From positions 1 through 50,411 of the forward strand of contig LPNZ01011109.1 in assembly GCA_001655205.1 (NCBI GenBank): 50,411 nucleotides of DNA. Reading direction: 5' to 3'. Of the stretch, positions 13,100 through 50,411 are shown piece after piece (positions within the stretch are counted from its first letter, which is position 1; each line of letters starts with the position of its first letter). The notes under the pieces were generated by a model. The model ran no database searches and was not told the DNA's origin. It saw only the letters and a program-made list of their open reading frames with translations. A program made the translations under genes and the position numbers. Origin of the DNA: Lenisia limosa. Its lineage: Eukaryota; Protista; Breviatea.

Positions 13100-14841
<1,742 letters not shown>

Positions 14842-22703: not shown

Positions 22704-23162
22704 ATGTCTGTCGCTAAGGTTTCTCATCCGCTCTACACCGTCATGGCCCTGACTGCCGTCAAGGAATGCTCCGGCCGCACCGCTGCTTCTCTTGTTGCCA
22801 TCAACAAGCACCTCGTCGAGAAGTACCAGCTTACCCCCGCCTCTTGCCGTACCAACGTCAACCGCGCTCTCAAGAAGCTCGTTGAGGAGAAGAAGGTCGA
22901 GAAGATCAAGGCTTCTTACAAGCTCCTCGATGCCGGCAAAGAGGCTCTCAAGCCCAAGAAGGCCCCTAAGAAGGTTGTCAAGAAGGTCGTCAAGAAGGTC
23001 GTCAAGAAGCCCGCTGCCAAGAAGGCCGTCAAGAAGGTTGTCAAGAAGACTGTCAAGAAGGACGCTAAGAAGGCTGTCAAGAAGACTACCAAGAAGGCCA
23101 CCAAGAAGCCTGCTGCCAAGAAGGCCGCCAAGAAGACTGCCCCTAAGAAGGCTGCCAAGTAG
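22704..23162 (+). CDS. H1: Linker histone H1, intronless
   Basis: Winged-helix globular domain (SHPLYTVMALTAV...SLVAINKHL...VNRALKKLVEEKKVEKIKASYKL) plus Lys/Ala/Val/Pro-rich tail; strong codon bias. Confidence 0.93.
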   Translation: MSVAKVSHPLYTVMALTAVKECSGRTAASLVAINKHLVEKYQLTPASCRTNVNRALKKLVEEKKVEKIKASYKLLDAGKEALKPKKAPKKVVKKVVKKVVKKPAAKKAVKKVVKKTVKKDAKKAVKKTTKKATKKPAAKKAAKKTAPKKAAK

Positions 23163-47771: not shown

Positions 47772-48032
47772 TTGTTGACAATTCAGCCGAAGCCAAAGCC
47801 AACCAAGAGTACAGAGCTGACCGGCCTTGCGCATTGGGACGACTGGGACCTTTTGGATGAGTCCAGTGACGATGAGTCAGAAACGGACCTTGACTCCGGC
47901 ACGGACTCCGACCAGGATAGTGACGTTGTCTTCAAAATGTACAGCGATGACAAAAAAGAAAGCGCCCGCTTGGTGGACGATAGAGGCACCGAGTACGAAG
48001 TCGAGTCTTTAGAAGGAACCCCTTCAAAATGA
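47772..48032 (+). CDS. Small acidic ORF, probably the last exon of an unknown gene
   Basis: HWDDWDLLDESSDDESETDLDSGTDSDQDSD..., GC-richer than flanks, preceded by an acceptor-like ttgacaattcag. Confidence 0.4.
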   Translation: MLTIQPKPKPTKSTELTGLAHWDDWDLLDESSDDESETDLDSGTDSDQDSDVVFKMYSDDKKESARLVDDRGTEYEVESLEGTPSK

Positions 48033-48122
48033 CACTGTTTTTATCTTTCATGTTTAGATTGTTTTTCTGTTTTCTGTTTCCTGAGAAATGTAGTGATTTC
48101 ATTCGAAATAATAAATAATGAA

Positions 48123-50241
48123 CTAGTGATACTCTGAAATAATATTACAGAGCACTTCGTGAGATTCAGAGAGACATCCTTCTTCCATACCTTCACCAAC
48201 ATACCAAAAGTGGAATGCTCTTTCTGGAAAGGGGTCAGGCAGGAACATTTTGAATGCATGGCATTCCCTTGCTCACTGCAAATCATCTTGGTGTACTTCT
48301 TCTCCAGTGCACTGAAAGCGTCACCCATGCCTTTAGCGTTTCCTATCAAACAGGCCGACTGTCGTGGCGAAACCTGAAAGTCAGCTTTCCCGAGACATTT
48401 TTTTTTGTATCAATTTTCATTCATATTTTCATTGCTGTGTTTTTGTTGCTGAAAATATTACTAACATTGTTCTTTGATTAAAAGTTCATTGAGATCCCAG
48501 CAAACCTGGTCCCAATGAGATGGTAATGTGATCATCTGTTTGTTTGTAGCAACAGCAAGAGTCCTGTTGTTAGTAAACTGAAGGTCCAGGTCAGAAACAG
48601 CCTGTTCCGCCTCTTTTGGTGTGATATCTCCCCTAAATAGAAGGCAGGCCGCAGTCAGGGGCTGGAGCAGCGACACGGAAAATGAAGGGTTGAGACTGGC
48701 TGATGAGGCTATGGTATTCGGACTGGGGGCGTCAATATCGGACTGGTGTGCACTGAGGAAGGGCGAAAGGCCTGTGACCTGCGCACTTAACAACTAACAA
48801 TGCAAGGGAACACGAAATAAAAAGACCATTAAACGCCGACCTGATATTTGCAATGAAGAGAGTCAATTAGGGTGGCGTAGTCCGATGTGGATCGGAGTAG
48901 ATCTCGGTCAAAGCCCAATCTCAAAGGAGTCGTTATTGCCGAGACATATTGTGCATAAAGACGATTGACATGCTCAATTTCTGAGTATTGTGGGGCAATT
49001 GTCTCATGAACAACTCTAGACAGGGACTGATTGTCAAAAACAAATGCCGAGTTAGAATGCTCGTACGAATATGCAATAGCAAGAACAGTGTTGTATGTGT
49101 CTTGTACGAAGTTTGAAGAAGAGTATTGTAAAGAGGGCATCAAGAGGAACTCAGCCACATCACAGGAATAGGCATCCTGAATGTGCTCAAGAATCTCATT
49201 GCCGTAGCCAGAGCCAGAACCTCCACTGAGTGCTCGATGTACATGAAAACCCTTGAAAAAATGAAAAATAAAAGCGGTCTTCCTAATCTTTATCCCATCC
49301 ATACCTCAAAAGTGTCACATGCTTCAACCTGTTGTCTGAGAGCATTTTCCGTGTCGGGCATTAGCTCTTTTCCTAGAATGTCATCTCAAAACACAACCCT
49401 CAAAAAACAGGAGTGGTAACTGTCTCAAAAAATACGCTTTTGAAAAAAAGGGAATTCAGTCAGAACTTAGTTTCAGGTGGTGTGTCAGCCTCAAAATAGT
49501 TAAACTACTTACAAATCAACGGATACCGGAATAATATGTATAATTAAGAGTGAAGTACAACACAAGAAACAAGAAAGAAATAAGATATAATGACTTCATT
49601 AAGGGTTTTACTGACAAGTTTGAGACCAGTTTTCGGCACAATGTGAGAACCACAAGCAATTGTTATCAACGGGGAAAAATAAGTATTGAGAAATAGTTCA
49701 GAAAAAGGGGGGTAAACTGTGACGAAGCACACCATTTGTTTTGTGACTAAAGTCACAATCTCCTCAAAACATCTCCAACTCACCAAGCCTGGTTCCTGCT
49801 GAAAAGATGTTTCCTGCATTTTCCTTTCCTAAAAAATGAGTTCTCTGAAAATAACCTTCTCTGTGTGGCTCAGATTAAGGATTACAGCTGTATGGATTTT
49901 GAAACAGTGTAAAATGTATTTCCCAAAATAATAAACGTGAGGAATGTTTCCAGTCAAATGAGCAAAATTGGAACAATTGTTTCCGACCTCCAACCCAAGA
50001 CAACTTGTCTGTCATCAATATAGAAACGGCGGCGGAAGTTCTGTGGGCCGTACCCGTCAAGATCGGTGAAAATGGCCCGAGACCGCAGACCGTTTTCCGT
50101 TTCGTGGAAGACCTGATGGACGTTCTCACAATCCCACTCGCGACCGAGGGAGCAGTCGAATGAGGCTGACAGATGTTCATGATGAAGCAGATCCCAATAG
50201 GCCAACCCAGTCTCTGTGCCCGCTTGGCCCACACTATGCAA
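48123..50241 (-). CDS. Highly divergent alpha-tubulin-like protein; first exon(s) unresolved near the window end
   Basis: VGQAG...YWDLLHHEH, FHETENGLRSRAIFTDLD, ENAGNIFSAG, LRQQVEACDTFEGFHVHRALSGGSGSG, FVFDNQSL, AACLLFRGDITPKE, SACLIGN, KRAFHFWYVGEGMEEG then SEYH* (TAG 48123-48125). Confidence 0.87.
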
Positions 50242-50411
50242 TTATGAATATCGAGATTATTGGATTTCTTTTTAATAGTTTTGGACATAGTGCAAAAAAA
50301 TCTTATACTAACTATGAGGTTGATAATTATTGCTGACCAATACCATTTAAAATAAATATACAAAAAATAGTATTATGTATCCCCCCAACTGAATGCTTAC
50401 AACGCCCATGA

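Follow-up and report, generated by a model that had tools for sequence, protein, structure and literature searches.

Divergent alpha-like tubulins are already known. For tubulins as a whole we follow the six-class framework of PMC4202323. Tetrahymena has three alpha-like and six beta-like tubulins, and two of the latter, BLT1 and BLT4, are 56-65% identical to canonical beta-tubulin and are found in subsets of non-axonemal microtubules (PMC3382179). A ciliate-wide 'divergent group' of tubulins has been described, with similar groups reported for Retaria (PMC11321004). Naegleria builds a restricted set of its microtubules with mitotic alpha-tubulins, which are divergent isotypes (PMC9036621; PMC12934608). 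At the level of single residues, D251 and E254 of alpha-tubulin have both been implicated in catalysis (PMC10319017), and human tubulin carrying E254D hydrolyses guanosine triphosphate (GTP) about 4-fold more slowly, without losing the activity, and nucleates more easily, with long GTP caps and hardly any catastrophes (PMC7018511). Here we describe an extreme case, a tubulin gene on the minus strand of contig LPNZ01011109.1 of Lenisia limosa, all 50,411 nucleotides of which were analysed and are called the window below. The gene is real, spliced and transcribed, and its product is a member of the tubulin superfamily with a degenerate catalytic loop and no acidic tail. Judging from its sequence, it is about evenly balanced whether it encodes a functional, lineage-restricted paralogue, most probably derived from a fast-evolving alpha duplicate, that would serve as a specialised GTP-binding, beta-pairing subunit with weak GTPase-activating capacity.

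The gene model was built by eye and verified by script. It has eight exons running from 50409 down to 48123 and encodes 417 amino acids; all seven introns are GT-AG, with lengths of 156, 166, 411, 53, 62, 132 and 53 nucleotides. The first-pass annotation of this DNA had placed the gene at 48123-50241, overlooking a 20-nucleotide first exon and the 156-nucleotide intron behind it, and the true start is at 50409. The peptide of exon 1, Met-Gly-Val-Val-Ser-Ile-His ahead of VGQAG, matches the alpha N-terminus MRECISIH-VGQAG, and full-length alignment to other tubulins spans residues 3-416. Evidence for expression comes from one public study with a DNA run (X2, containing 100% of the words) and a poly(A) RNA library (X1, containing 50% of them, which is the exon share); it consists of assembled contigs from a single RNA sample, so that level, stage and strand lie outside its reach. 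A single 1,316-nucleotide contig from the poly(A) RNA is colinear with the gene model and has all seven splice joints at the predicted sites, with CT..AC ends on the plus strand, while none of the seven joints occurs in the DNA run. The contig ends about 30 nucleotides after the stop codon on its 3' side and extends 29 nucleotides beyond the end of the window on its 5' side. This settles the doubt, raised in the first-pass annotation, whether the gene might be unexpressed.

The reading frame also bears the marks of a coding sequence. By composition, a run of 417 codons would be free of stops with a probability of about 1e-9, and none of 20,000 shuffled sequences stayed open, with the other two frames containing 12 and 28 stops. 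The guanine-cytosine (GC) content is 47.8% in the coding sequence vs 34.5% in the introns. None of the marks of a pseudogene is present in the gene, be it frameshifts, stops, lost splice sites or a missing transcript. In a maximum-likelihood tree the terminal branch leading to the protein has a length of about 2.2 substitutions per site, and because the 417-codon frame has stayed open along such a branch, neutral drift of a gene copy is excluded for practical purposes.

Database searches were run exon by exon, with full-length comparisons of the 417-residue protein scripted locally. The protein has a tubulin fold. Exon 5 matches the Pfam domain PF00091 (E = 5.9e-12), and exon 6 on its own is a weak match to PF03953 (E = 0.096). 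An AlphaFold2 (AF2) model of exon 5, made from an alignment of 44 rows, has a mean predicted local distance difference test (pLDDT) score of 82, falling to 56-70 over the last 27 residues. It superimposes on tubulin chains with Z scores of 9.3-10.3 and a root-mean-square deviation of 2.5-3.0 Å over 129-134 residues, and a structure search with it does not separate alpha, beta, gamma, Asgard and bacterial tubulins. The only Atlas features on exon 5 are generic tubulin fragments. The T4 signature of tubulins, [SAG]-G-G-T-G-[SA]-G, is PROSITE pattern PS00227. In the divergent protein T4 reads S-G-G-S-G-S-G and falls outside this pattern; T145 is replaced by Ser, which retains the hydroxyl. The rest of the nucleotide pocket is largely kept: Q11, A12, D69, N101, G143, G144, G146, S147, G148, N206 and N228 are all retained (Gln10, Ala11, Asp64, Asn93, Gly134, Gly135, Gly137, Asn198 and Asn220 being those given in the protein's own numbering). 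Conservative changes are found at E71D, T145S and E183D, and other changes at S140 (Ala), G142 (Ser) and Y224 (Ile). The first-pass annotation had pointed to SGGSGSG, DNQ and VNRL as signs of a largely retained nucleotide site, and this view holds.

Conservation is uneven over the surfaces of the protein. Helix H11' is reported to be the most conserved element of alpha-tubulin and contacts H8 of beta across the intradimer interface (PMC12934608). Here F404, W407, Y408 and V409 of H11' as well as the GEGMEEG motif are intact, so the residues that contact beta H8 are preserved. The plus face is 40% identical to alpha, the minus-facing surface of T7, H8 and H10 about 22%, and the lateral loops about 20%. 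Compared with alpha, the H1-S2 loop is short by 4-5 residues and contains no Lys, with K40 aligned to Trp40, in agreement with the first-pass annotation, which had noted that a loop of the K40 type was absent. It had also seen the protein stop at SEYH without a tail, and this is what we find, with the stop codon TAG at 48125-48123: in the alignment to PDB chains the terminal His417 corresponds to alpha E433, one residue past Y432, and the C-terminal tail is absent.

The most striking change lies in the catalytic loop between T7 and H8. By eye, the first-pass annotation had aligned TSDYATLIDSL to the canonical NVDLTEFQTNL and read position 254 as Thr. Three alignments agree on another register, namely MAFFT L-INS-i, a profile hidden Markov model (HMM) built from 25 alpha and alpha-like sequences (posterior 8-9) and hmmalign. 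They give N249 as Leu243, D251 as Ser245, E254 as Asp248 and F255 as Tyr249, with a single gap at Q256 after which TLIDSLHCKY aligns without gaps to NLVPYPRIHF. The earlier coordinates for TSDYATLIDSL (48862-48894) were also shifted by about 6 nucleotides, the codons actually lying at 48888-48856. Secondary structure assigned by DSSP to the exon-5 AF2 piece points the same way: H7 covers residues 92-112 and H8 residues 122-132, with a loop of 9 residues between them, and the Asp (piece residue 124) stands third in H8. In a canonical alpha control run through the same procedure H8 covers alpha 252-259 and E254 likewise stands third in it, although both models are of isolated fragments and are of low confidence there. 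Position 254 thus most likely retains an acidic residue, Asp248, going by alignment and model. That the catalytic Glu is gone was right from the start, since T7-H8 is devoid of Glu, and the pattern N.D..[DE] fits in no placement. T7 reads L-R-S-T-S-D in place of N-V-D-L-T-E, and in the sequence the motif N249-x-D251-x-x-E254 is degenerate. Also lost is NLVPxPRxHF, a near-universal motif that follows H8, whereas nearly all other divergent alpha-type representatives keep at least NLVP. The loss of E254 is not unique to this gene, because it recurs in 23 of the 88 divergent alpha-type representatives that cover T7, a biased sample (Ala in 6, Asp in 5, Lys in 3, Ser in 2, Gln in 2, and others once each).

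The search for relatives used exon 5, the longest and best conserved (137 amino acids), as query against 1.84 billion cluster representatives, searched exhaustively. The sole strong match is an open reading frame (ORF) call of the same contig (P0001, 256 amino acids), and the remaining tubulins reach at most 39% identity. P0001 has no cluster partners, a word search with it gave no further sequence, a scan of JGI metagenomes gave no relatives, and no further tubulin was found by tblastn in the window or in the 10 kb upstream. Across these searches the divergent tubulin is an orphan. Some high-ranking candidates for relatives had to be set aside, the second and third entries of the exhaustive search among them: P0002, P0003 and P0005 are tubulin entries with an internal duplicated segment, giving two matched stretches and inflated scores, and look like assembly or gene-call artefacts rather than close kin, and two odd tubulin fragments considered as paralogues from the same assembly, P0048 and P0127, were traced to other samples by contig look-ups.

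As to the class of tubulin, the top matches of the full-length protein are canonical alphas, at about 160 bits and 29-31% identity. Among the best 150 matches of the exhaustive search, labelled by BLAST to labelled references and with the gamma labels verified against PDB, 99 are alpha-type, 27 gamma-type and 24 beta-type. Only one recognised delta-type fragment (P0125, named via Atlas) is among them, at rank 125 with 26% identity, and these search ranks give no sign of membership in the known delta, epsilon and zeta classes, a possibility that the first-pass annotation had listed as a refutation of its proposal. Single exons give further indications. For exon 8, all 60 of the PDB matches listed are alpha-tubulins, aligned to residues 402-432; for exon 6 the matches are weak (E 0.14-0.8) and all are alpha-tubulins except one repeat-protein entry; for exon 5 yeast gamma and alpha are tied; and exon 2 has no PDB match at E <= 1. 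The protein carries several alpha signatures (A12 in GQAG, CLLFRGD, V409, E414 and G416), has 14 of 16 identities in the KRAFxxWYVGEGMEEG block, and has a stretch of 22 residues from S9 to SNTTAI, as in alpha (22) and unlike beta (14). The alpha signatures VGQAG, CLLFRGD and KRAFHFWYVGEGMEEG named in the first-pass annotation are confirmed on the minus strand, where the H11' block KRAFHFWYVGEGMEEG lies at 48277-48177 and is interrupted by intron 7.

A tubulin superfamily phylogeny had been proposed as a check, and it gives part of an answer. Trees and approximately unbiased (AU) tests covered alpha, beta and gamma. In the maximum-likelihood tree (LG+C20) the protein falls on the alpha side of a split from beta and gamma with support of 100/99, amid long-branch alpha-like proteins, although support at its own node is 52/33. 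The gamma clade has support of 100/100 without it. In the AU tests, a position as sister to beta is rejected (p = 0.006) and a position as sister to gamma is borderline (p = 0.068). The local signatures and the matches of exons 6 and 8, which among tubulins are to alpha only, speak for the label 'alpha-tubulin', while the weak tree node and the tests taken up below argue for caution. An alpha origin is our best guess rather than proven, and it draws mainly on local shared characters and on the absence of relatives. Since relatives are absent in all other sampled organisms, recent fast divergence is favoured over an ancient family.

Compared with canonical alpha (human TUBA1B and the alpha chains of PDB), the divergent protein shares the tubulin fold, the GQAG of T1, most N-site contacts, the NRL of H7, CLLxRGD, the H11' residues with GEGMEEG and the long S9-S10 loop. 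It differs in being only 29-31% identical, in having LRSTSD for NVDLTE, in the loss of NLVPYPRIHF, in the shorter H1-S2 loop without K40, in a deletion of six residues around H10-S9, and in the lack of the acidic tail with its terminal Tyr and polyglutamylation sites. Like the divergent tubulins of the Tetrahymena type, which arose by lineage-specific duplication of alpha or beta and have long branches, it has altered GTP-site and contact residues and no tail motifs for polymodification; unlike them, it is about 30% rather than 56-65% identical to the canonical protein, and no relative was found for it. The gene itself also differs from those of Tetrahymena and Paramecium, having standard stops, introns of 53-411 nucleotides and 40% GC. 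A ciliate genetic code was considered and ruled out, as both the beta-tubulin gene of the window and the divergent tubulin gene end on standard stops at natural positions and have no in-frame TAA or TAG. The mitotic alphas of Naegleria are also divergent alpha isotypes, but theirs vary at 404, 407 and 408 of H11', which the present protein keeps, being changed instead in T7, H8 and the lateral surfaces. If Asp248 is the equivalent of E254, the protein would be a natural counterpart of the engineered human E254D; the engineered E254D and E254A tubulins, however, carry one-residue changes, while the present protein is altered at D251 and N249 and throughout the H8-S7 motif as well, so that docking itself may be altered. 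Gamma-tubulin is similar in its 27-32% identity to alpha, in having no acidic tail of the alpha/beta type and in having no Glu at 254, and it acts at microtubule ends and not in the lattice, much as a capping role would have it for the divergent protein. It is dissimilar in having GQCG and no GEGMEEG block; the gamma clade excludes the divergent protein, and the gamma profile gives the lowest of its three HMM scores (144 bits).

The role that we consider most plausible, at the even balance given above, would work as follows. The divergent tubulin is predicted still to bind GTP as a structural nucleotide, and to pair with the ordinary beta-tubulin of the organism through the plus-facing surface, which is preserved. 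Both the minus-facing (interdimer) surface and the lateral ones appear remodelled, and because they would no longer fit a standard lattice the protein is unlikely to be a bulk lattice subunit. When docked on beta, Asp248 without its Asn and Asp partners would stimulate GTP hydrolysis poorly, with the losses of N249 and D251 probably weakening activation beyond the effect of the Asp itself. Loss of the tail would remove sites for motors, microtubule-associated proteins and tail modifications. The outcome may be stable, modification-free sites or ends, with the protein acting as a stabiliser or capper in a small subset of structures. The first-pass annotation had likewise proposed a specialised tubulin that could stabilise, cap or nucleate GTP-lattice microtubules. 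Some of our own results weigh against this picture. A higher identity of the plus face than of the minus face (40% vs 22%) is also found for gamma against alpha and largely reflects nucleotide loops common to all tubulins, so this asymmetry, common to gamma and other divergent tubulins, is weak evidence. The AF2 model covers one exon and its pLDDT is 56-70 at T7-H8. As to the alpha origin, a placement at the base of beta and gamma is compatible with the AU test (p = 0.27), the class HMM scores are nearly tied between alpha (174.7 bits) and beta (171.9, with gamma at 144.4), and the protein shares 10 of 51 diagnostic columns with alpha and 5 of 28 with beta. No orthologue was found across the searches.

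The rival explanations differ in how far they depart from this role, and two of them concern the origin of the gene. It is highly improbable that the gene is a transcribed pseudogene under neutral drift. Such a reading would account for the extreme divergence, including the 6 of 23 columns invariant in alpha, beta and gamma that are unmatched here (the prolines P63, P72 and P184 and three insertion or gap columns), and orthologues that could reveal constraint were not found; but 417 codons have stayed open on a branch of about 2.2 substitutions per site, all seven GT-AG introns are preserved and spliced out in poly(A) RNA, exon GC (48%) stands well apart from intron GC (34.5%), and the glycines and asparagines of the nucleotide pocket are retained. 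Rather unlikely, though with more to be said for it, is an origin outside alpha, either as a delta, epsilon or zeta member or as an old independent family that kept alpha-like motifs. Overall, the protein is no closer to alpha (28.9% identity) than gamma-tubulins are (27-32%), the basal position next to beta and gamma survives the AU test, the alpha and beta HMM scores are close, and the tree covered the alpha, beta and gamma classes. On the other hand, the exon-5 search is led by alpha-type sequences, followed by gamma and beta, with the one delta-type fragment far down the ranking, and the Ala of GQAG in place of the GQCG form, the KRAF...GEGMEEG identities, CLLFRGD and the S9-SNTTAI stretch all point to alpha. 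The absence of a relative in other sampled organisms also suits recent fast divergence better.

The other rivals accept a working protein and concern what it does. The main alternative to a stabiliser or capper is that the protein no longer enters a polymer and is a tubulin-fold protein with a non-lattice job, e.g. sequestering or chaperoning of beta-tubulin, or a scaffold in a lineage-specific complex. We regard this as unlikely but as deserving serious attention: NLVPxPRxHF is lost where nearly all other sampled tubulins retain at least NLVP, identity to alpha is low on the minus-facing surface (22%) and in the lateral loops (20%), and the N-terminal exon is too divergent to match a PDB tubulin at the threshold used. 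Against it, the nucleotide pocket and H11' are retained, and gamma-tubulin is equally distant at these surfaces and yet makes longitudinal and lateral tubulin contacts; the idea also overlaps with the capping version of the role proposed above. At the other end, the protein could be an ordinary if divergent polymerising alpha isotype with roughly normal dynamics, in which Asp248 is the catalytic base as in FtsZ, which uses Asp at the position equivalent to 254. The best alignments do place an acidic residue there, and polymerisation and GTP hydrolysis persist in human E254D tubulin (PMC7018511). We find this quite improbable, as N249 and D251 are missing along with the H8-S7 motif and the tail, as the lateral loops have been remodelled, and as an identity of 29-31% to alpha is far under that of working isotypes, the beta-like tubulins of Tetrahymena being 56-65% identical to canonical beta (PMC3382179). 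A bolder proposal, which is improbable though slightly less so, is that the protein founded a new tubulin class, alpha-derived within one unsampled eukaryotic lineage: it would form a tail-less dimer with ordinary beta that is unable to propagate the lattice, and would act as a genetically encoded end-capper or terminator of microtubules, or as the seed of a permanently GTP-like, modification-free lattice.

The coordinates of the gene and of other features of the window are collected in the table below. It is worth noting that the beta-tubulin on the same contig is canonical: it is 86% identical over the C-terminal 198 amino acids to an unrelated beta representative, so the divergence described here is not general tubulin drift, as the first-pass annotation had argued from the high conservation of that gene.

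Features of the window: the divergent tubulin gene and other genes on the contig (for features on the minus strand the lower position is given first, except where codons or motifs are listed in reading direction)
Feature	Position	Strand	Remarks
Exon 1	50390..50409	-	Start codon 50409-50407; Met-Gly-Val-Val-Ser-Ile and 2 bases of the His7 codon; RNA joint 50233/50390 with CT..AC ends (GT..AG on minus)
Exon 2 (residues 7-87)	49995..50233	-	T1 loop VGQAG 50232-50218; shortened Lys-free H1-S2 loop; T2 (DLD); Pfam Tubulin E = 0.0038
Exon 3 (residues 87-102)	49784..49828	-	T3 loop GKENAGNIF; N101 retained as Asn93; RNA joints 49371/49783 and 49827/49994
Exon 4 (residues 102-124)	49305..49372	-	Helix H3 region; sequence model and RNA contig
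Exon 5 (residues 125-261)	48841..49251	-	T4 SGGSGSG 49227-49207; T5, T6, H7; degenerate T7-H8 48924-48841; Pfam Tubulin 5.9e-12; PDB tubulins ~1e-12
Exon 5 codons (residue map)	Leu243 48897-48895; Ser245 48891-48889; Asp248 48882-48880; Thr251 (read as position 254 in the first-pass annotation) 48873-48871	-	
Exon 6 (residues 262-352)	48506..48778	-	M-loop region; CLLFRGD 48646-48626; shortened H10-S9 region
Exon 7 (residues 353-385)	48277..48373	-	End of S9-S10 loop and H11
Exon 8 (residues 385-417)	48123..48223	-	H11' (RAFHFWYVGEGMEEG) and H12; terminal SEYH, stop TAG 48125-48123; acidic tail absent
3' untranslated region, short	48097..48122	-	RNA contig stops ~5 nucleotides past 48097
Canonical beta-tubulin gene	13187..14841	+	N runs at ~13.7-14.1 kb leave middle exons incomplete (gene at 13.1-14.8 kb)
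Linker-histone H1 gene, intronless	22704-23162	+	Pfam PF00538, E = 3.5e-12; identical sequence in Atlas; its closest named clusters are mostly of diatom origin

Some further observations were made around the gene. Just past position 50411 lies a poly(C) tract of about 35 nucleotides with one T inside (L001:9155-9190, minus strand), which abuts the start codon and forms the 5' untranslated region. Both the window and the Logan DNA contig end at this tract, and the RNA contig enters it by 29 nucleotides. The tract may genuinely serve as a C-rich leader or promoter element, or it may just be what caused the assembly to break. At the other end of the gene, a convergent gene on the plus strand ends within 47772-48097; the C-terminus encoded by its last ORF (47772-48032) is acidic, rich in Ser and Asp, and has no Pfam match. 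The RNA contig of the convergent gene reaches 48090, and the tubulin mRNA has its 3' end about 7 nucleotides away, at 48097; with so little between the two transcripts their 3' ends are very tightly packed. A contig of 168 nucleotides and low depth (4) from the RNA run covers 49814-49981 of the window, mostly within intron 2, and represents either unspliced precursor or DNA carry-over. Rfam and tRNA scans gave no matches, and Pfam matches of neighbouring ORFs were uninformative as to the organism.

The protein stands as far from alpha as gamma-tubulin does, and yet its gene is clearly expressed and shows coding constraint. Three changes that mutagenesis studies usually take up one by one come together in it, namely a weakened activating loop (a natural E254D with the loss of D251 and N249), the lack of a tail and the lack of K40. 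If it does pair with normal beta, it would be a natural experiment on a hydrolysis-poor, tail-less alpha in the cell. Beyond this organism, the recurrence of alpha-type sequences without Glu254 suggests that specialised alpha paralogues commonly evolve by way of losing the catalytic glutamate.

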